From positions 186,001-250,000 of the IMG/VR virus record IMGVR_UViG_3300043446_005562: a stretch of 64,000 nt of DNA; one strand, 5' to 3'. Below are positions 436-41,396 of the stretch, piece by piece (position 1 is the stretch's first letter; each line of letters starts with the position of its first letter). A program made the translations under genes and the position numbers. The notes under the pieces are model-generated. The model saw only the letters and a program-made list of their open reading frames with translations, was not told the DNA's origin and ran no database searches.

Positions 436-1032
436 TTAGTCTAGTGAACCGAAATCGCCTCTGCTCATAGCTGCGGCAAATTCTCTATCGGCTTTTGAAT
501 CTTTAGCGATATTAAGCCCGATAACGCGCTCGGCAATTTCCGGATTTTGTTTTAAAAATTTAATTAGGGCTCCTGTATCAATGTCCTGGTATTCTCCAGA
601 TCCACCAAATTCAACAAGCTCTTTTTCTAACCTAAACATTGGCGATCTATTAGTCAGCTCAAGGTGCCAAATGCTAAACGTTATGATTTGACCGTTGCGC
701 TCCATGTGATCGGCCATATCTGTCAAATCTTTGACTACGTCAGCTAACGCGTATTCCTTGTCCATTGCCCTGTCCCATTCGTTCCATTGCTTTCCATCAA
801 CCTTTATGTTGATTGGAGTAGATGCGTTGGAGAATCCGGGCACCAATACAGTTTCCAGATTTGGGCACAGTTCAAATATTTCAGCCAGATCCACTGCAAA
901 ATCCTCAATAGTTTCGCCCCTTAGACCGTGATCAGGTAGAAGACCCTTTGCTTTTAACCAGGCTCTGCGCTGTCTGTGAGCTGATTCGGCTATAAATTCG
1001 GTGAATCCTTTAAGATTTTTCATGCAAGACAC
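436..1032 (-). CDS. Hypothetical protein with N-terminal capsid-targeting-like motif (probable start at 1023)
   Basis: MKNLKGFTEFIAE resembles the T4 internal-protein CTS. Confidence 0.65.
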   Translation of the reverse strand: MSCMKNLKGFTEFIAESAHRQRRAWLKAKGLLPDHGLRGETIEDFAVDLAEIFELCPNLETVLVPGFSNASTPINIKVDGKQWNEWDRAMDKEYALADVVKDLTDMADHMERNGQIITFSIWHLELTNRSPMFRLEKELVEFGGSGEYQDIDTGALIKFLKQNPEIAERVIGLNIAKDSKADREFAAAMSRGDFGSLD

Positions 1033-1039
1033 TTTCTTG

Positions 1040-1648
1040 TTATTTATTAGGCTCGATGCCTAAAAGTCTGTAACACTCAGCATTAAAGCTCTGGGCTGAT
1101 GCTGAATCAAAATGATTGAATGAAATGCTTAGGCCGTTATTTGAGCTTGAATTTGCAAGCCAGGTATTGCCAATATCCAATAGATGTGCCATGGTCGACT
1201 GTTCTTCTTGGGTTGAATGAGCTCCATCCCAAGTGTCCTTGGCTCTAGCTGAATCGCCGGTTTGGCCTGCAACCGATACGACCAGAGTTTTGCAATTTTT
1301 AAATAGATCAGAACTTAAGAGCGAAAAGTACTCTAACTCGGCTTTAGTTTTAGACAATCTGCCTCTAAGAATTGCCCATGTGTATGCTGAAACAATCGCT
1401 CGATCAAATATCCAAATCTTATCTTTGTATTCGGGCCGCTGATTCATTTCCATAATGGTCATGATGTTGCCAAGGCTAAAGTAGTGTAGGCTCGGACTCT
1501 TTTCATCGGAGACCATATCAAGAGTCTTGATGTGATTTGCGAAATAGAACTTGTAATACTCTAACCTTGGATCAGAGCACTCTTTTAAAAAGTTATTGAT
1601 TAAAAATGTTTTGCCCGAGTGTCTTGGGCCCTCAATGAATAATATCAT
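1040..1648 (-). CDS. P-loop nucleotide/NMP kinase-like protein
   Basis: N-terminal FIEGPRHSGKT Walker A and IFDRA motif typical of thymidylate/deoxynucleoside kinases. Confidence 0.65.
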   Translation of the reverse strand: MILFIEGPRHSGKTFLINNFLKECSDPRLEYYKFYFANHIKTLDMVSDEKSPSLHYFSLGNIMTIMEMNQRPEYKDKIWIFDRAIVSAYTWAILRGRLSKTKAELEYFSLLSSDLFKNCKTLVVSVAGQTGDSARAKDTWDGAHSTQEEQSTMAHLLDIGNTWLANSSSNNGLSISFNHFDSASAQSFNAECYRLLGIEPNK

Positions 1649-2175
1649 ACAATTCTAAGACGATCGGTCTCAGCAAATTCTTCAAGTGAACGCGCTGTAT
1701 CCCAATCAATTTTAATTATTTTACTCTTATCTACGAAAATAAAGTCGATATCGATGTTCAAGCCGGCGTCTAGGAACCAGGCTGTGTACTTTATGATCTC
1801 ATACAGGGAATCCTCAAAGATTGTAATTGAGGTGGCTTCATTTTGCCGAATCAAATCAATCGCTAATTCAGCCTTTTCGCCTTCCCGGCCCAAAAAGAAG
1901 GTTTTTTCAAATCTAATCTTGTGCTCGGCCAACAGCTCAATCACCCTTGGCTGACAAGCTTTCACTCGATGGGTTATCAAGTAGTTTAGGGCGTCATCTT
2001 GGGTTCTTTCAATTGTATTTTGAATGCCTCGAATGTTGAACTTTTGGTCTAGCGACTCCGGTGAGTCAAACCATTCGTAAGGCAACTTGCCCTTGGCCTC
2101 ACTGCATGTGTAGCCGGGTACCCTGAATAGGGTTTCATCAAAATCAAATACGTTAATGTGCACTTTAGTTTCCAT
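1645..2175 (-). CDS. HAD-superfamily phosphatase
   Basis: VFDFDETLF motif I, ITHR motif II, IFEDS motif IV. Confidence 0.7.
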   Translation of the reverse strand: METKVHINVFDFDETLFRVPGYTCSEAKGKLPYEWFDSPESLDQKFNIRGIQNTIERTQDDALNYLITHRVKACQPRVIELLAEHKIRFEKTFFLGREGEKAELAIDLIRQNEATSITIFEDSLYEIIKYTAWFLDAGLNIDIDFIFVDKSKIIKIDWDTARSLEEFAETDRLRIV

Positions 2176-2233
2176 GCAGTTCTTTTACTGATAAATAAAC
2201 TTGTAGTTTTAATTATAATGTACCAAATCTAGT

Positions 2234-4801: not shown

Positions 4802-5587
4802 TTATCTTTCTTGAATTTGTTCTATTGCCCATTCGGTGAACCACTTTTGGGCGCTCTGGGCAAATTTCCTAGGTCGTTCGCTAATTTCTCTTAGATCATT
4901 CCAAATCTGTTCAGCTCTAGCCTTTTCTTTTGTCAGCGCTTCGCGTATATGATCCGCGTCCTTTTTAAAGTACTCTAGTTGATCAGGAGTCTCAGCTAGA
5001 CCGAGTTTAACAAGTCTCAAGAATTTTGGATCATGCGCAAGCTTAATTAGTTCGGCCCACCAATCTTCATCCTCCTTTGCTTCAGTCTTAGTATCATGAT
5101 AAGTCATTAGATCATCTTCAATTGAATTAATAAACGCTTCGCCGCTTACATCGGGCACAATGATCAACCAGCCGCCGCTGTTGCCGCCCCAACCAGTATT
5201 TTCAATCCACGAATAGTACTCCTGAATATCCTCCTGAAAGAATTCACGCTGATCCTCAATCCAACTCCACCACATGCTGTCCAATTCATCATCACTTAGT
5301 TCTTCTTCAGTCATTCCAACTCCATGTCGGATTGCATCAAAATCCGGCCATGTATGAATTTTTGCGTCTATTGCAAAGTGATCCTCTCTAAAATTACGGC
5401 CTTCCCTATTCCACCAATACTCGTTTTCAAGTTCTCCCCACATGCGCTGAACTTCGTCCATTAGCTCAGGAATTCCTTCTTCAAAATAAAAGTCCTGATA
5501 GTCTTGACCGTAATCTCTAGCCAGAGACATGTCTTGTTCTTGCCATCGACGTATTTCAGTAATAAATTGTGTGAACGTCTTTACCAT
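4802..5587 (-). CDS. Acidic hypothetical protein with CTS-like N-terminus
   Basis: MVKTFTQFITE. Confidence 0.7.
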   Translation of the reverse strand: MVKTFTQFITEIRRWQEQDMSLARDYGQDYQDFYFEEGIPELMDEVQRMWGELENEYWWNREGRNFREDHFAIDAKIHTWPDFDAIRHGVGMTEEELSDDELDSMWWSWIEDQREFFQEDIQEYYSWIENTGWGGNSGGWLIIVPDVSGEAFINSIEDDLMTYHDTKTEAKEDEDWWAELIKLAHDPKFLRLVKLGLAETPDQLEYFKKDADHIREALTKEKARAEQIWNDLREISERPRKFAQSAQKWFTEWAIEQIQER

Positions 5588-5952
5588 TATCTACCCATTT
5601 TGCTTATTTCTATTGCCTGTAGTTGTTTGATTGCCTTTTCTCGACTGGGATGAGTTCCCAATACCTTTTTACCACTCTTATCAGTTACGACCCATTTGTT
5701 ACCGCGCTTAAGCACCTTTTCATTTAGTGCTTGATATTCAGAAAAACGAATAACTCGATTTTCGGATAGGGCGGGTTCCATTATAGCTTGTGGTTTTGGC
5801 TGTTGTATTGAGATGGACTCAACCTTATTCACAAGTTCACTAACCTTATCCCTAATCAATTCTAATTTTTGAATTTGATCTTGCGTCAACGATTCATTAG
5901 ACTCTTCAACAACAAAGAGATATTCAATAAAAGAATCGAGCTGATTTTCCAT
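5587..5952 (-). CDS. Hypothetical protein with basic C-terminal domain after an internal CTS-like motif
   Basis: RVIRFSEYQALNE followed by KRGNKWVVTDKSGKKVLGTH. Confidence 0.65.
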   Translation of the reverse strand: MENQLDSFIEYLFVVEESNESLTQDQIQKLELIRDKVSELVNKVESISIQQPKPQAIMEPALSENRVIRFSEYQALNEKVLKRGNKWVVTDKSGKKVLGTHPSREKAIKQLQAIEISKMGR

Positions 5953-6563: not shown

Positions 6564-6629
6564 CCTTGTACTTTTTGGTTATTTATTTGGTACATTAAAC
6601 CAAAATACTCTTTATTAATACAAGACTGC

Positions 6630-10380: not shown

Positions 10381-12072
10381 ATGGCAGGATTCCTAGACAG
10401 TAACCCAATGAGATCTTTAAGATCTAGACTCACAGAGCTGAGTAAGTTTGGTATGAAATACGACGACCTACTGGTTAAAAATTCACAGGCAATAGGCTTT
10501 ATTGAAGGCCAAATGCGTTCATCTGGCACATCGTTGGGCGATGATTTAATGAGAGCCACACTAGCTCTATCCGATACAACATCTGCACTAAAGACAAAAT
10601 CAATTGCCTTTTTTCAAATGGACTATATTTCAAAGCGCGAAAGGCTTAGAGATATTGCCTCAAACGGCGAGATTGAATTTGTATTAGAGACAATCACCGA
10701 CGACTGTATTGTATTCGATGATGATAACCGTTTCTGTTATGCAAACGACCTAGTCGGCGAAATCCAGTACATGGGTGCAAACAAAAAGCAACGCCTTGAA
10801 TTTCAAGAAAAGGTTTTGACCAAATACCAAGATACATTTCAAAACATTTACAGCAAATGGGGTTTTGATCAAGGAATCTCGGCTTGGCAGTATTTTTATC
10901 AATGGCTGATTGAAGGTCATTTGGCATTTGAAATTATCTATGATGATCTGCTAAAACCCACTCAAATTATAGGTTTCAAAGAACTGGATCCAGCATCTCT
11001 CTATCCGGAAATGAAAAAGGATGCTAAGGGATCGCTGATTTTGCAATGGCAACAAAAGGATCCGGTTTCAAAAACCAACCGGACTCTATCTGATTCGCAA
11101 ATCATCTATATTTCCTACTCAAATCACATGCGAACCAAACGAGTTAGTTTTGTTGAGAGACTTGTTCGTTCGTTCAATATGTTACGTATCATTGAGCATT
11201 CAAAGGTTATTTGGCATACAATGCACGCCCCAATTCGTTTGGTAACAACTGTGCCGATTGGCACCAAATCAATGCAAAAAGCCAAGGAAGACGTTCGCGA
11301 ATTCACAAATACTCTCAAGGAGGATATTTACTTCGACGGCGACTCTGGCGAATTAAAGGTTGACGGTAAACCCAATATCCTATTCTATAAAAACTATGTG
11401 GTTCCAGTAAATGATCAGCAACAGCAGGTTAAGATTGAACCGCTAGAATACACCGGTCCAAACCTAGCCGGTTCCGAACTACTGAAGTACTTTCATGAAA
11501 AATTAAAAATGGATTCTAAAATTCCGGGTACTCGATTCGCAGAAGGCGGTGGAGCATTCACCTTGAATTCAGAAGGCATTTCACGAGAAGAAATTCGCTA
11601 TAATAAATTCATTCAGCGCTTGCGGTCAGCCTTTAAGGAGCTGATCACAAAGCCTCTCTATCTGCAAATGTGTTTGGACATGAAGGAGTTACAGAATGAT
11701 CCAAAGTTTGCAAACGCGGTTGGTGTTAGCTGGTACAATGATAATGTATTTGAAGAGATCAAGACTCAAGATCTTATCAACAAACGTCTTGCAACAGTCA
11801 ATGCCCTTAAGGCCGTGGTTGACGATGAAAACAAGCCTTACTTCTCTACCGAATTCTTGATTCGCGAATACTTAAAAATGAGCGATGAAGATATTCAAAA
11901 GAACAAGGACTATCAATCAGTTCAGGCCGGCGAAGCTGAAGAGGCGAAGGGCGGCGGAGCGGGTGGACCTGGAGGAGCGGGAGGCGGCGGCGGTGCAGCA
12001 GCAGCTGGTGCAGCGGCAGCAGAAGGTGGCGGAGAGTTCAAAACTGAGCTTGGAGCTAAGGGCCAATTATAA
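10381..12072 (+). CDS. Portal protein (T4 gp20-like)
   Basis: 563 aa; WLIEGHLAFEIIY, LRIIEHSKVIW, AFKELITKPLYLQ patterns; Gly/Ala-rich C-terminal tail. Confidence 0.85.
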   Translation: MAGFLDSNPMRSLRSRLTELSKFGMKYDDLLVKNSQAIGFIEGQMRSSGTSLGDDLMRATLALSDTTSALKTKSIAFFQMDYISKRERLRDIASNGEIEFVLETITDDCIVFDDDNRFCYANDLVGEIQYMGANKKQRLEFQEKVLTKYQDTFQNIYSKWGFDQGISAWQYFYQWLIEGHLAFEIIYDDLLKPTQIIGFKELDPASLYPEMKKDAKGSLILQWQQKDPVSKTNRTLSDSQIIYISYSNHMRTKRVSFVERLVRSFNMLRIIEHSKVIWHTMHAPIRLVTTVPIGTKSMQKAKEDVREFTNTLKEDIYFDGDSGELKVDGKPNILFYKNYVVPVNDQQQQVKIEPLEYTGPNLAGSELLKYFHEKLKMDSKIPGTRFAEGGGAFTLNSEGISREEIRYNKFIQRLRSAFKELITKPLYLQMCLDMKELQNDPKFANAVGVSWYNDNVFEEIKTQDLINKRLATVNALKAVVDDENKPYFSTEFLIREYLKMSDEDIQKNKDYQSVQAGEAEEAKGGGAGGPGGAGGGGGAAAAGAAAAEGGGEFKTELGAKGQL

Positions 12073-12090
12073 AGCTAATCTAATTTTTTA

Positions 12091-13002
12091 ATGAAATCTA
12101 AAGTAACTGTAATAGGTGGGGCAGGCTTCATCGGGTCTCACCTGGTATCACTCCTGTTAAAGAATAACTATAGGGTAATAGTAATAGATGACTTTTCAAC
12201 GGGATCACCTGACAATCTTAAAAATGATCTGGCAAATCCAGATCTTTTTTGTTTTAAATTCGATATTCTAACGGATTCACGGGTCAAATTGGCAACCCTA
12301 ATCGGCGGCTCAACTCACGTGTTCCATCTAGCCGCAAAGACCTCCGTTGAAGAGTCCTTACAGAATCCTCCAAGCTATCTTAAAGCCAATCTTTTGGGAA
12401 CAGTTGCGGTGGTTGAGGCAATGAAGCGAGCTAGAATCAAGCACATTATCTTTAGCTCAACCAGTGCAGTATACGGAGAGACCAACTCCTTTCCAACTCA
12501 TGAAGACTGCACGCCAAATCCAATATCACCGTATGCCATGAGTAAACTTATGGCTGAAAATTTCCTAAAGGATCAATCCGATATTTCAAGCGTAAGTTTA
12601 AGATATTTTAACGTGTATGGAGATCGCCCAAATTTACGTGGGTCGTATCGACCAGTGATGTCAGTTTTCTTGGAAAAATTTGCAAATGGGGAACCTCTAC
12701 CTATTATAAATGGAGGTTCGCAAAGTAGAGATTTCATTAACGTTGAGGATGTTGCCCTAGCAAATCTAGCCGCAATGAAAGTTCAGCAAGGTCATGCTCT
12801 ATTCAATGTTGGGTCGGGCACAGACTTGAGCATCAAGCTCATAGCCGATTCAATCTCAGCCAATCAAATAGAGGCAGCTCCTCGAGTAGAACCAACTCGT
12901 TCACTTGCAGATATTAGTAAAATTAAAAAAGAATTGGATTGGACTCCAAGAGTAAAATTTGATGAGTGGATTAGTCCTCGTATAGCGCGGCAAACGATCT
13001 AA
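12091..13002 (+). CDS. NAD-dependent epimerase/dehydratase (GalE/HldD-like extended SDR)
   Basis: GGAGFIG, HLAA, SSTSAVYG, YAMSK (YxxxK), RYFNVYG, SRDFINV. Confidence 0.9.
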   Translation: MKSKVTVIGGAGFIGSHLVSLLLKNNYRVIVIDDFSTGSPDNLKNDLANPDLFCFKFDILTDSRVKLATLIGGSTHVFHLAAKTSVEESLQNPPSYLKANLLGTVAVVEAMKRARIKHIIFSSTSAVYGETNSFPTHEDCTPNPISPYAMSKLMAENFLKDQSDISSVSLRYFNVYGDRPNLRGSYRPVMSVFLEKFANGEPLPIINGGSQSRDFINVEDVALANLAAMKVQQGHALFNVGSGTDLSIKLIADSISANQIEAAPRVEPTRSLADISKIKKELDWTPRVKFDEWISPRIARQTI

Positions 13003-13345
13003 CGCCGTCTATTGTTATGTCCAGGCCCAGTGAGGTTTTGTAAATATCGGATATATCGTCTAGCGTAAATGCCCTTGCACCGATTGCGTACTTCTTAGAC
13101 ATCATTACGTAATTTTGAATTTGAGTATGAGCCTCTTTTTCAAGCGAATCCAATGGATAGCCTTCAAATTCAAATAGGTATTTTGTAGTATCCAGACCAA
13201 AATCAGGTTCACCAAGCACTTCGCCCTTTTTGGTCAATAGGGTCATTCTAATCTGCTCAATGGTATTTTCAATATCATTTTCGCAAGAAAACAATCCTTC
13301 TCGATAATTTGGGTCACCCGGCGCTCTAAAATAAAAGTCTATCAT
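12971..13345 (-). CDS. Baseplate wedge gp25/GPW-like protein
   Basis: EQIRMTLLTKKGEVLGEPDFG motif. Confidence 0.75.
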   Translation of the reverse strand: MIDFYFRAPGDPNYREGLFSCENDIENTIEQIRMTLLTKKGEVLGEPDFGLDTTKYLFEFEGYPLDSLEKEAHTQIQNYVMMSKKYAIGARAFTLDDISDIYKTSLGLDITIDGVRSFAALYED

Positions 13346-13350
13346 AGTTC

Positions 13351-14085
13351 TTAAAAATTAACTAGGAACATCCAGTCTGCTGAATTTTCGCCCTTCATCA
13401 TGTCCATTACTGCAGTAAGTTCAGCTTCAGCTTTTGTAACTAGAGTTGCGTAATTGGGTTTTACTCCGCCTGGTAAACTATAGTCAAATGCGGTTAACAG
13501 GTCGCCCAATCTGATTTTGGACTTTGCTCTGACGTATCGTTGAAATACTTCATCTTCGTATAGATCCTCGGCGTCTATTTTTTTAGCAACTTGAACAACT
13601 GTTTCAGCCAATGGAGTTCTTCCCATTATTGTTAGCTTTTTAGTGTTTTTATTGTAATCGTAAGCTAGGGTATCAATTGTAAAATTCTTTGCAATATCTA
13701 GGAATGAAAATAGAACTGTCCTGTACATTAAAGATTCACCAATGAACGGTGTCAAGAATATCTCCGAGCCAATGAACTTATTGTCCGCGAAATCTTTATC
13801 AAGAGTTCCAAAAATACTACCGCCCTTTGCTTCGCGAACCTGGTGCACAAACTGTACGCAGTCTGGCATTTGAATAGCTCTCTCCTTTTTGAAAAGAGGA
13901 TTTGTAAAAACGTCTTTCGGTAATAGTAAGTATCTGGGCTCAATTGCATGTCGCCAATTATCATAAAAATAGCGCTCAGCGTTGGTAATAACACGCACTA
14001 TTTCCGCTTCTGGAATTGAATAAGGTAGAGCCTTTGCAAAGGTCATCTCATTTTGAATATCAAGTATTAGTTCGGCTTGAGTCAT
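13351..14085 (-). CDS. Neck/head-tail adaptor protein (gp13-like), putative
   Basis: 244 aa; C-terminal YVRAKSK...G...F...LPGGVKPN...AEAE pattern of T4-like neck proteins. Confidence 0.55.
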   Translation of the reverse strand: MTQAELILDIQNEMTFAKALPYSIPEAEIVRVITNAERYFYDNWRHAIEPRYLLLPKDVFTNPLFKKERAIQMPDCVQFVHQVREAKGGSIFGTLDKDFADNKFIGSEIFLTPFIGESLMYRTVLFSFLDIAKNFTIDTLAYDYNKNTKKLTIMGRTPLAETVVQVAKKIDAEDLYEDEVFQRYVRAKSKIRLGDLLTAFDYSLPGGVKPNYATLVTKAEAELTAVMDMMKGENSADWMFLVNF

Positions 14086-14098
14086 TTAATTAGATAAT

Positions 14099-14473
14099 TT
14101 AGGCCTTTGGCTGTTGCGCATCGGCTGTTTTTTGAGCATCCATTCTTTTAGACGCATCTAACAATTTGGCGTCAAGATCACGTTTTTTAGTTTCATAATC
14201 TGCTGCCTTTGGATCAAGTTTCTTGAGTTCAATATTAATATTATCAATCTCAACCTGAATTTCTAACGCCTTGGTCGACTCATCAATCTTTTGGGTTTTA
14301 GAGTAGTCAGGCTCAGTTGTGTCTAATGGGGTCAAATTTGCGCGTTTTACCTGGTTAATGGTCTTTTCCTTTTTAACTGGATCAGCCGGTTTAACGTCAA
14401 GCGCGTGTTTCTTGGGATCAACTAGCTCGTTGCCCTTTTTGAAATCGTCAAATTTTAAGATTCTATTCTTCAT
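14099..14473 (-). CDS. Hypothetical protein with CTS-like N-terminus
   Basis: MKNRILKFDDFKKGNE. Confidence 0.6.
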   Translation of the reverse strand: MKNRILKFDDFKKGNELVDPKKHALDVKPADPVKKEKTINQVKRANLTPLDTTEPDYSKTQKIDESTKALEIQVEIDNINIELKKLDPKAADYETKKRDLDAKLLDASKRMDAQKTADAQQPKA

Positions 14474-14492: not shown

Positions 14493-15914
14493 TTATTTAT
14501 CAAGCCCGCTATTCAGCGTTGATTTGTGGAATTTAGCATTATCGGGTTCATCTTTACAAAAATCGTTAAAGGTTTTAACCTTTCTTTCTTCAGGATTGGC
14601 GCCGTATCGATTAGACAACGGATTGGTCTTGAGATCAAATCTAGAATAGGGCTGAGTTGTTACCCAATGAGACGGTAGACCGCCGACTGGCACATTCACA
14701 TCGTTAGGCATCACATTTGGATCAATTTGCTGATCAAATGAGTCTGCTGGAATATCATAGGTGCCGACCTCTTCCTTAAGTTCAATTTGACCTGTAACTA
14801 TTTGCCAAATGAGCTCCTTATCCGAGCCTTCAGGTAATCCCTTAAAGAAATTTTGTTTGTCTTTTGCCCGAATGAACCCTCTCATTAGGGTACCCGAAAC
14901 TCCATCTGAGTCCTTTTTATTAGGATCCGCTGAGTTTGCCATAGCCTGACTTATCTCAGGTCTCTCGGTTTCAATTCTTTCAAGCTGTCTGATTCCGCCC
15001 AACCATTTTTCCATTGCTGCAAATCTACCCATATCTTCAGGTAGAGCATAGAGATTTATTTTATTATTGGGAGCGTCTTGTGTTTTGCCAAGGGCTTCAA
15101 CCCATTCGTATGATGATCTAACTGGTGTTACCTCAGCCGGATGAATCTTAATAGCTGAGTTCTTTTTGAAATAGAGTTTAAGTATCTCAACCGCCATTTT
15201 ACCTGTAATACCATCCTCAGGCTTTGGCGAAACAAACACGTGAAATTCATCGTTTTGAGCCGCGTACTTCTCAATCATTTTATAGTGACCAAGATGGGGC
15301 GGTTTGAATTTACCGGTAAAGATTCCAATTCTCTTAATTTCAAGTTTTGGTAGGTGTTTTGCCTTTACTCGATAGGTATTCACTGTGATTGGCAGCTCAG
15401 CTTCAAGCTCCTTAGCCAATTTTAAATTATTGACATCATCATCGAAAAATTTAAAATCTCGATAGCCCATTTCATAGAGTCTTCTAAATGCCTGCTGTTT
15501 CTTTTCAGCAACCGACCCGTGAAAACCTTCAGCCGGATCGTTAACTGCAATAACAAATTTTGGATGAATATCAATACCGTTTTCCAAAAAGAATTCACGA
15601 ATCATTGAACCCTTGTTGCGAGCGGTGATGATTCCAACCGCAGTTGAGTTTTCGTAAGTTTCTTTTAATATGCCAAGTATCTTCTCAACAAGCCGACCAG
15701 CCTTTAAAATTTGAGGATCTTCAAATTGGCTGTAATTAACCTCATGATGAGGCTGATGCTCGTATTCATTAAATTCCTGTGGAGTTAAATGAAAAATTTC
15801 ACCGGTTTTAGAGTCCTTCACAGCGATTCTTGCATTAGTAACAACTAATGTATCATCAAGATCAAATATGGTAATAGATTCTCCGCTAAAAGCCATTTCA
15901 TTTACTGATTTCAC
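14493..15914 (-). CDS. HAD phosphatase fused to HxGH nucleotidyltransferase (cytidylyltransferase-like)
   Basis: IFDLDDTLV...ITAR...FFDDD (HAD) followed by GKFKPPHLGH and GVSGTLMR (HIGH-class NTase). Confidence 0.75.
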   Translation of the reverse strand: MKSVNEMAFSGESITIFDLDDTLVVTNARIAVKDSKTGEIFHLTPQEFNEYEHQPHHEVNYSQFEDPQILKAGRLVEKILGILKETYENSTAVGIITARNKGSMIREFFLENGIDIHPKFVIAVNDPAEGFHGSVAEKKQQAFRRLYEMGYRDFKFFDDDVNNLKLAKELEAELPITVNTYRVKAKHLPKLEIKRIGIFTGKFKPPHLGHYKMIEKYAAQNDEFHVFVSPKPEDGITGKMAVEILKLYFKKNSAIKIHPAEVTPVRSSYEWVEALGKTQDAPNNKINLYALPEDMGRFAAMEKWLGGIRQLERIETERPEISQAMANSADPNKKDSDGVSGTLMRGFIRAKDKQNFFKGLPEGSDKELIWQIVTGQIELKEEVGTYDIPADSFDQQIDPNVMPNDVNVPVGGLPSHWVTTQPYSRFDLKTNPLSNRYGANPEERKVKTFNDFCKDEPDNAKFHKSTLNSGLDK

Positions 15915-25268: not shown

Positions 25269-25349
25269 TACCTCGGGTGGGACTCGAACCCACAAGCATT
25301 TCGCACTCGATCTTAAGCCGAGCGTGTTTACCAATTTCACCACCGAGGC
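25269..25349 (-). tRNA. tRNA-Leu(UAA)
   Basis: Type II cloverleaf, CTCGG-CTTAAGA-TCGAG. Confidence 0.95.
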
Positions 25350-25350
25350 A

Positions 25351-25427
25351 TGGGGTGACGGAGGGGAATCGAACCCCCGACCTTCTGAACCACAATCAGA
25401 CGCTCTAACCTGCTGAGCTACCGCCAC
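25351..25427 (-). tRNA. tRNA-His(GUG), no encoded G-1
   Basis: TCTGA-TTGTGGT-TCAGA, C73, CCA encoded. Confidence 0.93.
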
Positions 25428-25429
25428 AG

Positions 25430-25499
25430 AGGTCAATGTTGGAATCGAACCAACTCCGTGGGATTTGCAGTCCCATTGGCCTCCACGACCGAACTGACC
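25430..25499 (-). tRNA. tRNA-Cys(GCA) with shortened D-loop
   Basis: TGGGA-CTGCAAA-TCCCA, U73, D arm GGTC-GTGGA-GGCC. Confidence 0.85.
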
Positions 25500-25668: not shown

Positions 25669-26877
25669 TTATTTATTATCGGACCTGCCTAATTTACGTT
25701 TCACAGCTTCTCTGGTTTTTTCCATCTTTGCTGCGTAACTTGGATTCTTCTTTTTATTAAAATTAATCTGTTGATTTAGTGAACCTGATATTTTTTGTAG
25801 GTTCCTGCCTCTAGTTTTAATTAACCAATTAGCTAATGCATTTACTCCAAGTTCTTTAAATTTGCCGTTTGCGTCTGGTGCGTTAGAATCATGCCATTCA
25901 AGTCGCTTCTTTTCGGATACTGCATAATTATCTTCAATTGCTTGATCTACGATTTGTTCAATTTGAGCATCCGTAAATCCTAGATTTAACATAGGCTGTC
26001 TGAAAGACCATTTTAATTTATGAGTGAGTCTCTGTTTAATTTGTTCGGGAGTGGTTGCATAGTATCTAGTATCTCTGTGATTCACAAATACTTTACATAC
26101 GGCTTTAACTCGACGAACCATCTTCATTGGCTCTTTAATCAACTGTGCCATTCTTGAGGCTTTACCCTCATCGAATCCATAGCTGTTGAATAGACCATTC
26201 GCTCTCATCATGTCCTTTTCTTCAGGCTGAACTGCTTCAACGTCGATAAAATTGTTACTAGCTAAACCTAGTGCTTTTAATCTATTGTAATTACGTTGCT
26301 GATTTTCACGAATCTCTGACATTCTTTGAAATTCTGAGAGTATTCGTTGACTGCGATCGTATTCTTCTCCTCCGTATTTTCCCGAATAGTAGGCAAGAAC
26401 TGAAACTCCATTCATTAGATCAGAATATGCAGATACTCTTGTTGTATCAGGATCCTTCTTCTGTAGAGAAATAATATCTAACAGAATATCTTCTAGGAAA
26501 TCTAGCGCCGAGTTTGCATTAATTTGAGCTGGCTCGCTTTCAAGATCATCGTCCTCAATAATATTAACGTAATTTGTAACTTGATCCGCCAATTGTTTTA
26601 CTTCAGCCTCTGTGTTAGGCATCTCGGTGTTAACTGAAGATTTTTTAATCTTCTTTAGCGAAAATACTGGAACCTTTGCAATGGTTCCGTTGCTGCCTGT
26701 AAATTTGATTTTTGCGAACTCTCCATCAATTGATAATAATTGACCGTGACCACGATAAGTATCAACCCAATCCCCAGGTTCTAATTCTGGATTGTCCTCG
26801 TTCTTTGCAAACTCTGAGTCAGGGTCTTGTAAAAATTTATCAAGATCGAAATCTTCGAATAGTTTAACGTGTTTCAT
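25669..26877 (-). CDS. Multi-segment hypothetical protein with CTS-like N-terminus
   Basis: MKHVKLFEDF; 402 aa. Confidence 0.65.
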   Translation of the reverse strand: MKHVKLFEDFDLDKFLQDPDSEFAKNEDNPELEPGDWVDTYRGHGQLLSIDGEFAKIKFTGSNGTIAKVPVFSLKKIKKSSVNTEMPNTEAEVKQLADQVTNYVNIIEDDDLESEPAQINANSALDFLEDILLDIISLQKKDPDTTRVSAYSDLMNGVSVLAYYSGKYGGEEYDRSQRILSEFQRMSEIRENQQRNYNRLKALGLASNNFIDVEAVQPEEKDMMRANGLFNSYGFDEGKASRMAQLIKEPMKMVRRVKAVCKVFVNHRDTRYYATTPEQIKQRLTHKLKWSFRQPMLNLGFTDAQIEQIVDQAIEDNYAVSEKKRLEWHDSNAPDANGKFKELGVNALANWLIKTRGRNLQKISGSLNQQINFNKKKNPSYAAKMEKTREAVKRKLGRSDNK

Positions 26878-27289: not shown

Positions 27290-29026
27290 TTATTTATACT
27301 CAACCTTGACTCTAGACCTGAACTCCGGTGGAAATTGGGTGCCGGCGTTCTTGAAAAGATCAGAAAAACAGCCGTCTATTAGATAGGTTACTGCCCAGTC
27401 TTCTGGGGTTCTGATTGATCGTCCAACTCCCTGTAAAACCGAGACTGACGTCTTCCAGTTATACCATTTTTGAGAATAGTTTAGCTTGGCAGCAACGTAC
27501 TTGTCACCAAGATGAGGATACGGCACCTTTAAGAAGATTTGAAATCTGGACAGGTCGTCTACTAGATTTAGACCCTCAAGTAGAGATGGACCCATTGCAA
27601 CGAGTCCACGAGTCTTCTTCATCTTCTTGAGCATCTTCTCCTTTTCATCAGAGCCTTTGTAGAGCAGCACTCTTTTTCTAAGCTCCTTAGGCAGATTCTT
27701 CCAAACCTTTTGACCAAGCTCATAGGAGCCGGTGTGAATGATGCCGGACTCGGTCGAATGAGTCTTTAGAATTTCCGAAACTCGATTGACTGCCCATTCT
27801 AAATTATCGGCCAGAAATCTGGCTGACAATTTTTTACCCGGATAGAAAAAGATCGGCGACTTATCCCATTTAAAATGAGTCTCAATCTTGAAGTACTTTG
27901 CGGCCTTGATACCGTGATTTCGCATAAAGTCTTGGGTGTTTCCCATCGTAGCGGTCATCAGCAGTTTAAAGCCGAATTTATTAAAGAAGTGCTTGTGTAG
28001 TAGGTAGTATTCGTCAATGCAATTGAACGTGATTGAGGTTTCGCCCGGGTTCTTAACCATTTTTTCAAGACCGGTCTTCTCGATTATTTCGCAATAGTCT
28101 TCAAGCTTACAGTGAACGTCCTTTAACCAATCTGTTAAGTTAAAAGTTGCCAACCAATCCTGTGGAACATCGTTCTCTCCAAACTCCTTACCTGCAACCT
28201 CCCGAATGTCGGCAGTTGCCTTAACAAGTCCACCCAAGATTTTTGTTATCTCTTTTAGGTGAGCTAGGATAACGGCGGGTGCCTCCTCTAAATAGATCTC
28301 CTCAATGTTCTTTTTGAGTCCAATTAGATTAACACTGGGCACCTTAAGTCCCAAGTCACCAATGTTCTCAAGAGTCTTCTCAACCTTTTTGTAAATGTCA
28401 TGGGAAACGATTGGGCTAAAATGACTCTGTACAATGTCTAGTAGCTTATGAGCCTCATCACAGACCACAAAGTCTCTTTGTGGAAATGGGGAGCCTTTGC
28501 CCTTGCCCTGCTGCTGTTGCTCAACGTAGTTTCTCTGAATTAGTGCGTACGGATAGGTGAGTAGCGCAACTGGCGATTTTATTGCCTTTTTTCTGGCAGT
28601 TAAGTATCCGCACTGTTTAAAACAAGGTAGCGATTCTGCAGCTTCGTATGATATGCCCTTGCTCTTACAGTCGCCGACCGAAAAACGTTCTCCGTTAACC
28701 GCGCATTCATAGTTATCAACTCCCTTAATATTACCCCAATTCCAGAGCTGCATGCCTCGAAAGTCTTTGACGTACTGCTCATGTAGAGCCAGATCGGATG
28801 CAAGAATATAGCCGCGGTTGCCTTTGAAGGCCAGAAAATCAGCAAAAAGCATTGCAATGACGGATTTACCCGAACCAGTCGGTGCGTCTAACAGAAAGAT
28901 TCCATTTGGATCTTCGTCGTATGCTTCAATTATTGAGAGAATTGCCTCTTTCTGCTGGGGTCTAAACTCAAACATTGGATGTTTACCCTTGACAAATTGT
29001 TCAAATTCAGCCTTTAAATTACTCAT
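27290..29026 (-). CDS. DinG/XPD-family ATP-dependent helicase with Fe-S cysteines
   Basis: RPQQ, APTGSGKS, four Cys between motifs Ia and II, CDEAH, MTAT, LQGVGRSIR. Confidence 0.85.
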   Translation of the reverse strand: MSNLKAEFEQFVKGKHPMFEFRPQQKEAILSIIEAYDEDPNGIFLLDAPTGSGKSVIAMLFADFLAFKGNRGYILASDLALHEQYVKDFRGMQLWNWGNIKGVDNYECAVNGERFSVGDCKSKGISYEAAESLPCFKQCGYLTARKKAIKSPVALLTYPYALIQRNYVEQQQQGKGKGSPFPQRDFVVCDEAHKLLDIVQSHFSPIVSHDIYKKVEKTLENIGDLGLKVPSVNLIGLKKNIEEIYLEEAPAVILAHLKEITKILGGLVKATADIREVAGKEFGENDVPQDWLATFNLTDWLKDVHCKLEDYCEIIEKTGLEKMVKNPGETSITFNCIDEYYLLHKHFFNKFGFKLLMTATMGNTQDFMRNHGIKAAKYFKIETHFKWDKSPIFFYPGKKLSARFLADNLEWAVNRVSEILKTHSTESGIIHTGSYELGQKVWKNLPKELRKRVLLYKGSDEKEKMLKKMKKTRGLVAMGPSLLEGLNLVDDLSRFQIFLKVPYPHLGDKYVAAKLNYSQKWYNWKTSVSVLQGVGRSIRTPEDWAVTYLIDGCFSDLFKNAGTQFPPEFRSRVKVEYK

Positions 29027-31142: not shown

Positions 31143-31146
31143 CTTG

Positions 31147-31224
31147 TACCCTCTGAGAGACTCGAACTCTCACCCGAAGACTAGATCCTAAGTCTAGCGC
31201 GTCTACCAATTCCGCCAAGAGGGC
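31147..31224 (-). tRNA. tRNA-Leu(UAG)
   Basis: CTAGA-CTTAGGA-TCTAG, type II. Confidence 0.95.
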
Positions 31225-37028: not shown

Positions 37029-37059
37029 GCTATTTTAGTTAATGATATTATACTAAAAG

Positions 37060-37141
37060 TGGGAGTAGGTGGACTCGAACCACCGAACTCAGAAGAGGAG
37101 GGATTTACAGTCCCTTGCAATTGCCGCTATGCGATACTCCC
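37060..37141 (-). tRNA. tRNA-Tyr(GUA)
   Basis: AGGGA-CTGTAAA-TCCCT, type II. Confidence 0.95.
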
Positions 37142-37281
37142 AAAATAAGGAAAGGGGAAGATGGTTGTGTGGACGACCCCTTTTACGATTGGCTTTACTC
37201 TGCTAATGATCTGCCAACTCCGATGCTGCCAGTCGACCATTAGTCTCAAACTATTGACAGCTCATTCCCCAATCAACCTTG

Positions 37282-37356
37282 TCGGGGTGGCAGGATTCGA
37301 ACCTACGACCTCCTGCTCCCAAAGCAGGCGCGATAACCGGACTACGCTACACCCCG
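37282..37356 (-). tRNA. tRNA-Pro(UGG)
   Basis: CCTGC-TTTGGGA-GCAGG. Confidence 0.95.
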
Positions 37357-37438
37357 AAAATCAATACGCTTTCGCCCCCTGTATGGCGTATTACTGATGC
37401 TTAAGGTCGGCCTTAACCGTTAAGGGAGCCACCAGTTG

Positions 37439-37511
37439 AGCGGATGGCGAGAATCGAACTCGCATCTCCAGCTTGGAAGGCTGGAGTAATAAGCCATTAT
37501 ACGACATCCGC
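37439..37511 (-). tRNA. tRNA-Gly(UCC)
   Basis: CCAGC-CTTCCAA-GCTGG, U73. Confidence 0.95.
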
Positions 37512-37518
37512 TTATTTG

Positions 37519-37591
37519 AGCGGGAGACCGGGTTCGAACCGGCGACCTCAACCTTGGCAAGGTTGCGCTCTACCAACTGAGCTACTCCCGC
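37519..37591 (-). tRNA. tRNA-Gly(GCC)
   Basis: CAACC-TTGCCAA-GGTTG, U73. Confidence 0.95.
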
Positions 37592-37595
37592 AATT

Positions 37596-37776
37596 GGGTA
37601 GGATCAGACGTGTTCTGCCTACTAGGCAGGTCTGCCTACCGAGACCTCGTCGTTAACTTTCGTCAGAGCGTACCGAGACACCATTTGTTTTTCGACTTGA
37701 GGTAGTCACGGCCGCCTCTGGTCCTCTCAAGTCTATTTCGTATCGTGGCAAGATGCGGCTCGACCCTGATACGCTG
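37596..37776 (-). ncRNA. Candidate structured ncRNA between tRNA-Thr and tRNA-Gly
   Basis: Multiple helices, including GACTTGAG/CTCAAGTC and GGTAGG/CCTACC. Confidence 0.5.
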
Positions 37777-37778
37777 TG

Positions 37779-37851
37779 AGCCTCCTGCCGGGATCGAACC
37801 AGCGACCTACTGATTACAAATCAGTTGCTCTACCAGCTGAGCTAAGGAGGC
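37779..37851 (-). tRNA. tRNA-Thr(UGU)
   Basis: ACTGA-TTTGTAA-TCAGT. Confidence 0.95.
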
Positions 37852-37934
37852 AAGATGAACCGTCACAGTGGTTCAGTCTGGTCATTTTCTTCTTCAGTCA
37901 TCGGTAAACCGCGACCTTCTGACGGTGACATCCA

Positions 37935-38011
37935 TGGTGGACCGTGAGAGACTCGAACTCTCGACCCCCTGCGTGCAAGGCAGGTGCTCTAGCCAACTGA
38001 GCTAACAGCCC
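37935..38011 (-). tRNA. tRNA-Ala(UGC)
   Basis: CCTGC-CTTGCAC-GCAGG, G3:U70, CCA. Confidence 0.95.
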
Positions 38012-38017
38012 ATTTTG

Positions 38018-38089
38018 TAGCCCGTACGAGAATCGAACTCGTCTCTCATCCGTGAAAGGGATGCGTCCTAACCGATAGACTAACGGGCC
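38018..38089 (-). tRNA. tRNA-Glu(UUC)
   Basis: CATCC-CTTTCAC-GGATG. Confidence 0.95.
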
Positions 38090-38211
38090 AAATAAAAACA
38101 TAATACTACTTTAATAGCGCTTACCCAATTTTACAACAGAGCGCGTTACCTTGCTAGACCGTTATTGGGCAACGACTTCTAACAATCCTACCTACCCATA
38201 TTATGTTTTTG

Positions 38212-38283
38212 CGGTCCCACCGGGAATCGAACCCGGCACTTTGCCGTGACAGGGCAATATTATAGCCGATTAACTATGAGACC
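38212..38283 (-). tRNA. tRNA-Asp(GUC)
   Basis: TTGCC-CTGTCAC-GGCAA, G73. Confidence 0.95.
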
Positions 38284-38289
38284 TTTTGC

Positions 38290-38480
38290 TCCTTATAAAT
38301 CCTTCCCGTGCACAGAACAAGAAACTGGGGAGACGTTGTTTCTACTTTTATGAAAGGCTTGGGTACCCTCTCCCACCGTTTCGCAGGTTGAAGCGTCCAT
38401 CTCCACGCCGTCCCTGTGGAACTACAGTGGCTGGTTGTTGCGGCATGCTGCGCTGTGATGGAACATTCGCACAAGCATTG
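38290..38480 (-). ncRNA. Candidate structured ncRNA between tRNA-fMet and tRNA-Asp
   Basis: At least five complementary pairs plus a possible pseudoknot. Confidence 0.55.
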
Positions 38481-38482
38481 AC

Positions 38483-38557
38483 TGGTTGCGGGTGCTGGAA
38501 TCGAACCAGCGATCTTTGGGTTATGAGCCCAACGAGTTACCATTTCTCCGACCCGCG
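38483..38557 (-). tRNA. Initiator tRNA-fMet(CAU)
   Basis: C1:A72 mismatch, three G-C pairs in TTGGG-CTCATAA-CCCAA, CCA. Confidence 0.95.
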
Positions 38558-38562
38558 ATGTG

Positions 38563-38633
38563 TTGTCCCGCAAGGATTCGAACCTCAATTCTCTGGACCA
38601 AAACCAGATGTGCTGCCGTTACACCACAGGACA
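38563..38633 (-). tRNA. tRNA-Gln(UUG)
   Basis: TCTGG-TTTTGGT-CCAGA. Confidence 0.93.
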
Positions 38634-38704
38634 ATTTACTATCTCCAATACGTCAAAGAACCTAATTCTCTTTGTATAGAATATTATACTATATTCCAGA
38701 GATC

Positions 38705-38778
38705 TGGCACGAGTGGAGAGATTCGAACTCCCATCAACGGTTTTGGAGACCGGTATGCTACCATTGCACCACACACGT
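38705..38778 (-). tRNA. tRNA-Trp(CCA)
   Basis: CCGGT-CTCCAAA-ACCGT, CCA end. Confidence 0.92.
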
Positions 38779-38782
38779 ATTT

Positions 38783-38859
38783 TGGTTGGAATAGTAGGAT
38801 TTGAACCTACGACCTCATGAGTATCAGTCATGCGCTCTAACCAACTGAGCTATATTCCA
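38783..38859 (-). tRNA. tRNA-Ile(GAU)
   Basis: CATGA-CTGATAC-TCATG, CCA end. Confidence 0.93.
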
Positions 38860-38862
38860 ATT

Positions 38863-38938
38863 TGGTGGTGCGGGGCAGGATCGAACTGCCGACACCAGGA
38901 TTTTCAGTCCTGTGCTCTACCGTCTGAGCTACCGCACC
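38863..38938 (-). tRNA. tRNA-Phe(GAA)
   Basis: CAGGA-CTGAAAA-TCCTG, CCA end. Confidence 0.95.
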
Positions 38939-39134: not shown

Positions 39135-39196
39135 GGTTTAAGTTTTTTGTCTAGTTATTTATAAAGCTATTATACCAACTTTTCGGAAAAAGGTTC

Positions 39197-40054
39197 TTAG
39201 TGTTGAATAATTTTCTTGGAGGTTCCGTCATCATACAGATAAATCATGATTTCATCTTTGCGGATATATTGAACCGGCCTGCCTAACATATCAACCACAC
39301 CAATTAATTTGGGTTCACGTTTAGTAAAAGTTTTAATTCCGCTTGTAGTGCAAGTTTCAATTGTAATACGTGTGAAGAAGAATGTATCTTGGTCCAAGCA
39401 TTTATTATACCATTGAGTTGCAATCAAGTAATGACCATCATGAGGGAATTTGTATTTGATAATGCGAGCATCATTACCCGGTCCTTTCTGCCAAACCAGA
39501 TCGCTATCATTAAAATCGTAATACATGTACAGCTGATCATCACTCATAGAATCCCAGTCGTGCTGATTTAGAGAATCTAGCATAGGTCCATTCCAAATAT
39601 AAGAATACCACTGCCAACAAGTATCGCCTTTCTTCCAAGGACCCAGAGTCATTTCACCAACCATACTATCATTACAGGTTCCGGTAGTACTCTTTAAATT
39701 ATAGACAAACTTAGAGTTGGGAAAATAAATCAATTCAATAGGACGATAAATCAGAGTATCGCATCCTTTACAACGGTTTTTCACTACGACACGCAAGTAA
39801 TACTTACCCTTTTTGTTGAATTGAACTTCGCAAATACCCCTATACGAATAGACAGTATCTAATTTTTTGGTTTGAAGATCAATTACTGTAAACATGTAAT
39901 CGACACAAGTATCATCCAATACTTGACCGCTTAAATACCATTTGTAAAGGTTACGCTGATTCCATTGTTGAAGTTTTAACGTGCTCCAATCACATTTTGC
40001 AGAGGCAGTAGCTGATGCAACGAAAAGCAGAACTGCTAATAGTAGTTTTTTCAC
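39197..40054 (-). CDS. Secreted Cys-containing beta-rich protein with CTD-like C-terminus
   Basis: Signal peptide; C-terminal LIGVVDMLGRPV...IYLYDDGTSKKII resembles Flavobacteriales sorting-type tails. Confidence 0.6.
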   Translation of the reverse strand: MKKLLLAVLLFVASATASAKCDWSTLKLQQWNQRNLYKWYLSGQVLDDTCVDYMFTVIDLQTKKLDTVYSYRGICEVQFNKKGKYYLRVVVKNRCKGCDTLIYRPIELIYFPNSKFVYNLKSTTGTCNDSMVGEMTLGPWKKGDTCWQWYSYIWNGPMLDSLNQHDWDSMSDDQLYMYYDFNDSDLVWQKGPGNDARIIKYKFPHDGHYLIATQWYNKCLDQDTFFFTRITIETCTTSGIKTFTKREPKLIGVVDMLGRPVQYIRKDEIMIYLYDDGTSKKIIQH

Positions 40055-40109
40055 GCCGATCTTATACTAATCAGCACGCAATAAGTTTTTAATGGAAATG
40101 TAAAAAAGA

Positions 40110-40742
40110 TTAGTCTTGAGTCTGGGCTTCCAGGAAAGAAACTACGTCAGAGTAAATTGTCTCTTTATCTGAATTGCTTACGTCCAGCTCATCAAGCAAA
40201 TATCCGCGTTCTGGCACCAGCCTGTTAAAATCGTAGTCCGGTCCGCTACGGCCAAAGAATTCGCCGTGAACTCTAATGTCCCCTGTGTGCGTGACCTCAA
40301 GGGAAGTTTTAGCATAAACGCTATCCCAATTGTATTCCATCTGACGGCGACATGCGTCTTCATACTCGTATTCGGTCATCTGCTTGTCTTCATCGTGAAC
40401 CAAATCCTCTTGGCCCAGCATTCGGATTGCATCTGCTTGAGAACCCGAAGACAATACGTATTCGTCAAACGCAGCCGAAAACCAATTCGCAAGATCATAG
40501 TCATAAAGTCTAATCCATTGGTATCGCGGTATTCTATCAAATCCAGAGTTTGATAGTAGCAGCATTTGAACATAATCCTCCTCATCAATAAAAATTGAAC
40601 TCTCGCCTGTCTCCCTAACCAGGCTTGCCGCTCTGTGCTCCAGTCTAGTCAATTCGTCAGTAAGACCCAATTGAGCAAGGCGGCCTAATCTGTCCTCGTT
40701 CTCGGTTATGAATTGATTAAATCTCTTAAGGGAATGATTCAC
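40110..40742 (-). CDS. Acidic hypothetical protein with CTS-like N-terminus
   Basis: MNHSLKRFNQFITE. Confidence 0.7.
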   Translation of the reverse strand: MNHSLKRFNQFITENEDRLGRLAQLGLTDELTRLEHRAASLVRETGESSIFIDEEDYVQMLLLSNSGFDRIPRYQWIRLYDYDLANWFSAAFDEYVLSSGSQADAIRMLGQEDLVHDEDKQMTEYEYEDACRRQMEYNWDSVYAKTSLEVTHTGDIRVHGEFFGRSGPDYDFNRLVPERGYLLDELDVSNSDKETIYSDVVSFLEAQTQD

Positions 40743-41396
40743 TTAGTATCTGCGTAATTTTGCTAGGGCTCTTTTAGCCGCTTCACCGCGCTCGCGAATG
40801 TTGTCCTTTTCCTCTTGTGACATGTGTTTGTACTGTGCATGCTCAGGATCGGAACCCCAACGCTCAAGGTGATCTAGCGCGCTAACGTCTTGTCGATAGC
40901 CGTGTACCAAATCATCATTGCTGTCGCCCTCTTCATTGCGGCCTCTACGGTAAGGATAATTACCAGCTCCCTTATGATAACGGCCGTATTCGTACACCTC
41001 ATCATTTGGATCGTACTCGTCCTCGTCGTACCAGGTCGCGGGATCAAACTCTTCAGCAACTGCTCTGGTAAATTTTGGATCGGTTTGCAAAAATTCAATG
41101 GCTGAGTCAATTTCAGCCGGATCAGAGGTTTCAACGTATTCGTCGCCTTGTGCAACAGCCAACTGTAGATTGGCAATATTGAAGTCTGAAATTCCATAGA
41201 AATCGCCAAGCTCATGAAAGCCATGGCCCTCTTCTCTCTGTGATGGCGTGTATTCGGTTTCGCCCTCTACCTCGGCTGTGCAAATATAATCACGGCCGTC
41301 CATTGTGAATTCAAAATCTTCAACGGTAATCATTTGGGGTCCGCCGTGATGAGATTCATTCACGAATTGGCCGAAATTTGCTACAAAATTCTTCAT
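40743..41396 (-). CDS. Acidic hypothetical protein with CTS-like N-terminus
   Basis: MKNFVANFGQFVNE. Confidence 0.7.
   Translation of the reverse strand: MKNFVANFGQFVNESHHGGPQMITVEDFEFTMDGRDYICTAEVEGETEYTPSQREEGHGFHELGDFYGISDFNIANLQLAVAQGDEYVETSDPAEIDSAIEFLQTDPKFTRAVAEEFDPATWYDEDEYDPNDEVYEYGRYHKGAGNYPYRRGRNEEGDSNDDLVHGYRQDVSALDHLERWGSDPEHAQYKHMSQEEKDNIRERGEAAKRALAKLRRY

Follow-up and report, generated by a model that had tools for sequence, protein, structure and literature searches.

The concept of a capsid-targeting sequence (CTS) comes from bacteriophage T4. In the T4 record (NC_000866), ipII and ipIII both start with MKTYQEFIAE followed by Ala, ipI starts with MKTFKEF... and carries I-T-E|A further on, and gp23 is cut at F-G-S-F-L-T-E|A. 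CTS residues 4 and 7 have been assigned to capsid targeting and residues 8 and 10 to processing (PMC9026906, a review of Black's work); in T4 these residues are Y, F, I and E. The internal proteins of T-even phages are diverse, the CTS being their sole common part (PMC3012670), and the wider group of substrates of the T4 protease gp21 (gp22, gp23, gp24, gp67, gp68 and Alt) is cut at [LI]-x-E. Here we analysed a window of 64,000 nucleotides, bases 186001–250000 of the 252,618-bp virus record IMGVR_UViG_3300043446_005562 (GC content 41%), in which a first reading of the sequence (the original prediction) had noticed a T4-like CTS on otherwise unrelated proteins that it expected to be cut after Glu by a gp21-type protease. 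We find that a short N-terminal tag of this kind extends over the whole genome of what the sequence indicates to be a distant, uncultivated, T4-related jumbo phage. Whilst the CTS is known from T4, the scale of its use here is new, as are its occurrence in jumbo and huge phages that are distant and uncultivated and the tag-like repeats that stand in tandem within a protease-scaffold fusion.

The tag pattern M-K-x-[LIV]-K-x-F-x-x-F-[ILV]-x-E starts approximately 37 of the roughly 275 genes of at least 40 aa in our own gene call (about 13%, or some 1 in 8), clustered at genome positions 11–47, 135–140, 159, 176–191 and 200–227 kb. Seventeen of these genes are canonical, with the consensus M-K-x-[LIV]-K-x-F-[TS]-Q-F-[ILV]-[NT]-E-S. 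An Ar-x-x-Ar core (Ar, aromatic residue) falls within residues 4–9 in approximately 37 genes, and the tags, 10–17 residues long, are aliphatic at P3. The four conserved positions of the tag (aromatic, aromatic, I/L/V and Glu) are exactly residues 4, 7, 8 and 10 of the T4 CTS, and the spacing of the aromatics is also that of the gp23 cut site. As the four T4 determinants match and the T-even internal proteins are likewise diverse with the CTS in common, the T4 analogy is apt, and the MKTYQEFIAE assignment for IPII and IPIII on which the original prediction leaned agrees with the T4 record. We therefore regard an expanded T4-type capsid-targeting/propeptide family, used on approximately 13% of genes, as the likely explanation, and the set of otherwise unrelated proteins packaged by the phage is probably unusually large.

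The likeness to the T4 CTS proteins covers the short N-terminal tag (10–19 residues), the otherwise unrelated cargo, the dispersed and fast-evolving genes and the predicted cut after Glu by a gp21-family protease, and would extend to late expression. There are also clear differences. Approximately 27–37 genes are tagged here against 4–5 ATG-proximal matches for T4 in the same scan; the tag favours F..F and ends in -N/T-E-S where T4 has Y..F and -A-E-A; the first aromatic lies at a variable residue (4–9) and spacer variants exist; and most of the cargo is acidic, with wall hydrolase domains among it. In T4 itself, the 54-aa hypothetical protein gp61.1 (NC_000866, 18966–19130) starts with the CTS-like MKTFKEFIKED, outside the known internal-protein genes. 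The phiKZ-like giants (phiKZ, 201phi2-1 and SPN3US) also process many head-internal and ejection proteins after Glu with a gp21-related protease (PMC5694885, PMC9026906), but their S80 propeptides are mostly longer than 100 residues, have an A/S-x-E motif and no short common N-terminal consensus and were found by mass spectrometry, whereas the tag described here is short, recognisable from sequence and T4-like. The phiKZ-like S80 propeptide class was rejected for this phage, whose protease matches the S77 (T4) family and whose tags have the length and aliphatic P3 residue given above.

The enrichment of the motif at N-termini is far beyond chance. A position-specific scoring matrix (PSSM) was trained solely on the eight window sites of the original prediction and applied, with a cut-off score of at least 8, to the 179 genes outside the window. 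N-termini at or above this score were found in 13 of the 179 genes, compared to 0.56 among internal decoy windows and 1.3 among shuffled N-termini, so that the motif is not a product of background. The strict class pattern [FYW]xx[FYW][ILVM]xE occurs 39 times in the proteome, where approximately 10 are expected from composition; 14 of these matches start at residues 4–8, eight lie in the protease-scaffold protein described below and 17 are scattered. A scan independent of gene calls returned 16 ATG-proximal sites, where the reversed genome gave 0, and the motif followed an internal Met in only 2 of 1228 cases. Lastly, in an unbiased search with gapped class patterns, the strongest enrichment at N-termini was seen for l..a..a, +.a..a and a..a..E, all pieces of the motif (p of 1e-9 to 1e-13).

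The genes for the major capsid protein (MCP) and the protease-scaffold lie outside the window, at genome 159538–163250. The protease occupies the N-terminal third of a protease-scaffold fusion of 660 aa (genome 161268–163250, minus strand), which scores 37.3 bits against PF03420 (Peptidase_S77; MEROPS S77), above the cut-off, and whose GELDHP (His) and SSRAAG (Ser) motifs align with those of T4 gp21 in BLASTP. Unlike in T4, protease and scaffold thus form a single polypeptide. In residues ~288–445 of the fusion, a 14-residue unit, Y-x-x-Y-[LIV]-[AG]-E-N-v-x-K-g-I-x, is repeated approximately 11 times in tandem; seven of the copies are strict, with further near-matches, whereas T4 gp22 has no strict pattern match. 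With 0.8% of the residues of the proteome, the protein accounts for 8 of the 25 strict matches that are not N-terminal, and its repeats are conserved in five relatives at identities down to 58%. These tandem tag-like repeats suggest how the tag might dock. An AlphaFold2 model of the fusion was of low confidence (predicted local distance difference test, pLDDT, of 46) and drew the repeat region as long helices, which is weak evidence; prediction of a complex between scaffold repeats (x2) and tag residues 1–40 gave a score of 0.00 at low pLDDT and counts neither for nor against binding. The MCP belongs to the gp23 family (PF07068, E=9e-41), and its residues 45–53, F-[DE]-N-A-G-S-[LI]-N-E (here F-D-N-A-G-S-L-N-E), are conserved in the five relatives, in which indels directly follow the Glu. 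We infer that this L-N-E site is the propeptide junction. As among the gp21 substrates of T4, [ILV]-x-E sites appear in both scaffold and MCP. Directly upstream of the protease-scaffold gene lies a gene for a J-domain-like protein (genome 163316–164194, minus strand; judged from its N-terminus only). GroEL-like (genome 124647–126227, plus strand) and GroES-like (139807–140133, plus strand) proteins are also encoded, an assignment likewise made from the N-termini only, and the GroES-like gene is followed by that of a tagged protein in which a HAD-like DxDG motif is present.

Most of the tagged proteins are ORFans without recognisable function in Pfam, PHROGs or the ESM Atlas. Only five of them scored above the curated Pfam cut-offs, together with the protein of window gene 14493–15914, which carries a core-only internal copy; PHROGs gave no match for the tagged proteins of the window, and in the ESM Atlas the tagged proteins matched only unnamed viral clusters, below 0.9. 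The proposal of the original prediction that these are injected anti-defence or takeover effectors gains no support from this annotation of the cargo. Good tags are found on proteins with PG_binding_1 (genome 24758), VanY (25125) and CHAP (27285) domains, none of which (0/3) showed a hydrophobic signal-peptide N-terminus. Since these would be wall enzymes without a visible export signal, they fit virion-delivered wall hydrolases. Many tagged proteins are very acidic, with isoelectric points (pI) of 4.1–4.9, and several tags are followed by Ala/Pro/Gly-rich linkers. In an AlphaFold2 model of the product of window gene 40743–41396 (pLDDT 66), residues 1–18 are unstructured (pLDDT below 40) ahead of a folded domain, for which no fold match was found in the PDB (template-modelling score below 0.3). 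The tagged set is lineage-restricted and evolves fast: orthologues in the 253-kb relative G002 were identified for 36 of the 37 tagged genes at 56–91% identity, whereas the scaffold of G002 is 94% identical.

The octamer ATAAATAA, with the T4 late-promoter core inside it, was found approximately 25–30 nt upstream of the start codon in 20 of 37 tagged genes compared to 33 of the 237 remaining genes (p=3e-7). The genes for the protease-scaffold, tail tube and sheath and other large structural genes are preceded by it as well. In the window, where the original prediction had noted late-promoter motifs at several of the genes, all eight genes with N-terminal copies and all three with internal copies lie directly behind a ATAAATAA-type element or one to two genes downstream of it.

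The distribution of the tag was compared among phages by counting ATG-proximal strict sites in the same scan. T4 has five (including ipII, ipIII and the uncharacterised gp61.1), G002 has 26 and the uncultured huge phage LR756500 has 23, with the consensus MKYIKEYEEF[ILV]xE. PTm1 has three, pT24 has none, and Lak-C1 has seven that are heterogeneous and without consensus. LR756500.1 (462 kb) carries approximately 30 loosely tagged genes, often in tandem clusters such as 11706–14282 and 313382–317720 (loci L080–L103), and its protease-scaffold fusion has Y-x-x-[YH]-[IV]-A-E repeats. It thus has in common with the window phage both the tag expansion and the tag-like scaffold repeats, but differs in the first residues of its consensus (Y..F) and in a genome twice as large; neither an annotation nor a publication was found for its motif. 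The scaffold repeats of PTm1 and pT24 are of another kind and in the Lak-C1 scaffold an acidic linker replaces them; the double-aromatic tag family was not found in the Tenacibaculum phages PTm1 and pT24. Over this handful of lineages, the expanded tag family co-occurs with tag-like scaffold repeats. pT24 (LC168164, loci L059–L070), a cultured system, shows a weaker N-terminal [FYW][ILV]xE family of 22 genes, where 7.8 are expected, with the form M-K-x-I-x-x-Y-[ILV]-x-E-S; this may represent the counterpart of the tag in that phage. In the literature, no paper was found that connects a capsid-targeting sequence with huge phages, megaphages or moraphages.

From the sequence alone we infer packaging, docking, cleavage and ejection or injection of the tagged proteins along the following lines. 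Late in infection, approximately 27–37 unrelated proteins would be made with a 10–17-residue N-terminal tag, M-K-x-[LIV]-K-x-Ar-x-x-Ar-[ILV]-x-E. The two aromatics, together with the hydrophobic residue three positions before them, would dock onto the prohead scaffolding core, that is, onto the C-terminal part of the gp21-like protease-scaffold fusion with its approximately 11 tandem 14-residue Y-x-x-Y-[LIV]-[AG]-E copies. Once the shell has closed, the protease would cut after the Glu of [ILV]-x-E and free the mature cargo in the head, the same cut being made in the scaffold repeats and in the propeptide of the capsid protein. The cargo, including peptidoglycan-active enzymes, would then exit with the DNA at infection. 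A more far-reaching form of this proposal, which we put forward only tentatively, is that the tag is a single free-standing copy of the 14-residue scaffold repeat: cargo would join the scaffold as one “unit” helix and be freed by the cut that dismantles the scaffold, and in the clade formed by this lineage and LR756500 the tag would serve as a general packaging address on more than 10% of genes, directing a large and rapidly turning-over injected arsenal.

Several observations weigh against the packaging scheme. In approximately 10 tagged genes a spacer of one to four residues separates the second aromatic from [ILV]-x-E, and approximately 10 of the 37, including window genes 14099–14473, 23864–24184 and 25669–26877, have the K-x-Ar-x-x-Ar core alone without [ILV]-x-E. 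The MCP site has one aromatic only, plus a spacer. The scaffold repeats favour Tyr and the tags Phe. When the repeats were turned into a residue-identity matrix, a single N-terminus scored above decoys and the F-type N-termini were not retrieved; we consequently propose that repeats and tags represent the same motif at class level only. The N-terminus retrieved was that of a Y..Y-type small basic protein beside the capsid gene (genome 159054, MKSVLSYEEYLFEKK). Some cargo, namely NUDIX and ATP-grasp proteins with weak tags and the protein with the HAD-like DxDG motif, resembles cytoplasmic enzymes, and 37 cargo species would be approximately 10 times the number in T4. No gp55 homologue was found in the genome by BLAST, and late expression of the tagged genes is suggested solely by the association of ATAAATAA with structural genes.

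A first question is whether the tag acts as peptide at all, as the pattern could in principle be the by-product of a DNA- or RNA-level feature such as a duplicated promoter-leader cassette or a translation-initiation element. The presence of ATAAATAA at a fixed distance from the start codon of many tagged genes would agree with such an origin. However, the spacers between promoter and ATG are unrelated among the tagged genes, and paralogous tags mix their codons (TTT 8 and TTC 6 at the first aromatic, GAA 11 and GAG 6 at the Glu, with 53% third-position identity), so that a duplicated DNA cassette was excluded. Synonymous differences between orthologues are equally common in the motif and beside it (78/304 and 87/285 codons), whereas non-synonymous changes are rarer in the motif (51 vs 76). 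The residue class at the four key positions is retained in 95% of cases across 25 orthologue pairs, compared to 66% for neighbouring positions, and in more distant contigs, at identities down to 25–44%, the tag is retained with class-preserving substitutions (F/Y/W and I/L/V). After removal of residues 1–20, no BLASTP match at E<=1e-3 was found among the 37 tagged proteins. In view of this freedom of synonymous change, a nucleic-acid explanation appears extremely improbable, and the tag is best described as a protein-level feature.

If the peptide itself is what matters, it might still bind a partner other than the scaffold, such as the phage J-domain protein, GroEL/GroES, or a membrane or tail assembly site. 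The phage does encode GroEL-like, GroES-like and J-domain proteins, the last of these directly upstream of the protease-scaffold, and the Lys-preceded hydrophobic/aromatic core of the tag loosely resembles Hsp70 client motifs. The absence of the motif from PTm1, pT24 and Lak-C1, despite their gp21-type proteases, points in the same direction. We nevertheless give this explanation little credence: it accounts neither for the invariant Glu two residues past the aliphatic position, nor for the match to all four mapped T4 CTS residues, nor for the scaffold repeats, in which a motif of the same class recurs, nor for its correlation with repeat type across genomes. Another alternative retains prohead entry and cleavage but regards most tagged proteins as accessories of the core or scaffold during assembly, comparable to T4 gp67 and gp68, or as head-internal structural proteins, which would be degraded or retained rather than injected. 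The protease-scaffold, with its many motif copies, is indeed expected to be degraded, the acidity of many tagged proteins is unlike that of the basic, DNA-associated internal proteins of T4, and the small basic protein encoded at genome 159054, next to the MCP gene, is kept in all five relatives, as would be expected of a structural component. Against this, cargo with CHAP, VanY and PG-binding domains would be sensible only with delivery to the cell wall, and the fast-evolving, lineage-restricted character of the tagged set resembles that of T-even internal proteins engaged in arms races (PMC3012670). This second alternative therefore seems unlikely to us.

Should the tag work as in T4, the proteins that uncultivated jumbo phages package in the head, and probably eject, could be listed from sequence only, a task that normally needs virion mass spectrometry. 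The approximately 37 fast-evolving ORFans found here, and the approximately 23–30 in the 462-kb LR756500, would then be first-line candidates for host takeover, wall breaching and anti-defence. The tandem scaffold repeats also suggest a testable answer to the old T4 question of the CTS binding partner, and proteins could perhaps be loaded into capsids with such a short, portable packaging tag for phages of the Bacteroidota type.

All eight N-terminal and three internal or C-terminal strings listed in the original prediction are present in the window. The positions quoted with them are the low-coordinate 3′ ends of minus-strand open reading frames (ORFs), and the N-terminal motifs lie at the high ends. 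The original prediction is supported in part: its central idea, a T4-like CTS common to unrelated proteins and predicted to be cut after Glu by a gp21-type protease, has strong support in silico. Five of the eight N-terminal copies have the canonical Ar-x-x-Ar-[ILV]-x-E; in the other three the K-x-F-x-x-F core is present and [ILV]-x-E is missing. Unless stated otherwise, the genes described below are on the minus strand and their tags were read from translations. The first canonical tag, MKNLKGFTEFIAE (985–1023), starts a 195-aa ORFan (436–1023) without Pfam, PHROG or Atlas match. Its most likely start is the ATG at 1023 rather than an upstream GTG, a late-promoter-like ATAAATAA lies 24 nt upstream (1040–1047, minus strand), and its G002 orthologue retains the tag at 62% overall identity. 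MVKTFTQFITE (5555–5587) starts a 261-aa acidic ORFan (4802–5587) whose orthologue in the relative G003, at 25% identity, still begins ...SFKQFIIES; the operon running from 6563 to 4802 is headed by ATAAATAA at 6579–6586 (minus strand). The canonical tag MQHIKSFTNFIEE (23399–23437) belongs to a 52-aa basic protein (23279–23437). The 210-aa acidic ORFan at 40110–40742 includes its tag, NHSLKRFNQFITE (40701–40739), only if translation starts at the GTG at 40742, and its G002 orthologue starts with MKRSLKRFNEFITE. The adjacent 217-aa acidic ORFan (40743–41396), with MKNFVANFGQFVNE at 41355–41396 and a promoter-like element upstream at 41415–41422, has homologues in close relatives only. In one of these, protein P0011, a domain of approximately 95 residues is inserted between the tag and the conserved domain, which shows modular shuffling behind the tag.

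The three partial tags are MKNRILKFDDFKKGNE (14426–14473), which starts a 124-aa protein (14099–14473) 27 nt behind a promoter-like element at 14493–14500; SRILSFEDFV at residues 8–17 (24134–24163) of a 106-aa very acidic protein (23864–24184), retained in G002 and located behind an element at 24206–24213; and MKHVKLFEDF (26848–26877) on a 402-aa ORFan (25669–26877) without family or Atlas match, which is the second gene behind an element at 27290–27297. A further promoter-like element, at 17009–17016, lies upstream of the gene at 15920–16984.

The internal and C-terminal copies, which in the original prediction may mark processing sites in polyproteins, are more varied. The 354-aa protein encoded at 15920–16984 has NTFDQFVNE at residues 276–284 (16133–16159) and YESYLNE at residues 330–336 (15977–15997). 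Its NTFDQFVNE site is the third-best internal PSSM match in the proteome and is conserved in G002. The 121-aa protein at 5587–5952 has an N-terminal variant, SFIEYLFVVEE (5902–5934), and an internal gapped site, RFSEYQALNE (5719–5748); G002 has this internal site unchanged and G003 in degraded form. The 473-aa protein at 14493–15914, with a cytidylyltransferase-like domain (Pfam PF01467), ends in a core-only VKTFNDF (14559–14579) that lacks a Glu site and is conserved in G002; a C-terminal core-only copy is also found in a protein encoded at genome 181288. Of the three window proteins, only the 15920–16984 product has a canonical internal site. The term polyprotein goes beyond the evidence. 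Internal or C-terminal processing at these copies is plausible by analogy with T4 Alt, which has C-terminal and internal sites too and is processed at both ends (PMC5694885). The top internal match in the proteome is IARYEEFVNEN, residues 105–115 of a 214-aa protein (genome 156331–156975, minus strand) adjoining the tail-tube gene, and this site is conserved in four relatives with class-preserving changes.

As to the phage itself, BLASTP identified a broad T4-like core in the 252,618-bp genome, including terminase, sheath, DNA polymerase, primase/helicase, UvsX/UvsW, topoisomerase and NrdAB. No DNA match to GenBank phages was found in near or distant search modes. The nearest match of the MCP among GenBank phages is LR756500 (36.5% identity), followed by Prevotella Lak megaphages (~31%) and the Tenacibaculum phages pT24 and PTm1 (30–32%), and on the basis of these affinities a Bacteroidota host is likely. 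The genome fits the published description of the freshwater “moraphages”, which have genomes of 200–307 kb, a T4-like core and DnaJ and form the sister group to Lak (PMC12619734), making it a candidate member of that group.

Inside the window, the head module is represented by the gene for the portal protein (10381–12072, plus strand; phrog_213, E=1.6e-61; BLASTP to T4 gp20). Nineteen tRNA genes, all on the minus strand, were located at 25168–25499, 31146–31224, 37059–38938 and 42700–42787, and the scarcity of ORFs at 37.0–38.9 kb is due to an array of 13 of them. Between 50827 and 60859 on the plus strand, a run of approximately 10 genes encodes proteins with Bacteroidota-style signal peptides or lipoprotein boxes at their N-termini, none of which carries the tag. 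The minus-strand genes at 43800–48500 have a GC content of 35%, compared to 41% for the genome, and may represent a horizontally acquired sugar/glycosyltransferase cluster.

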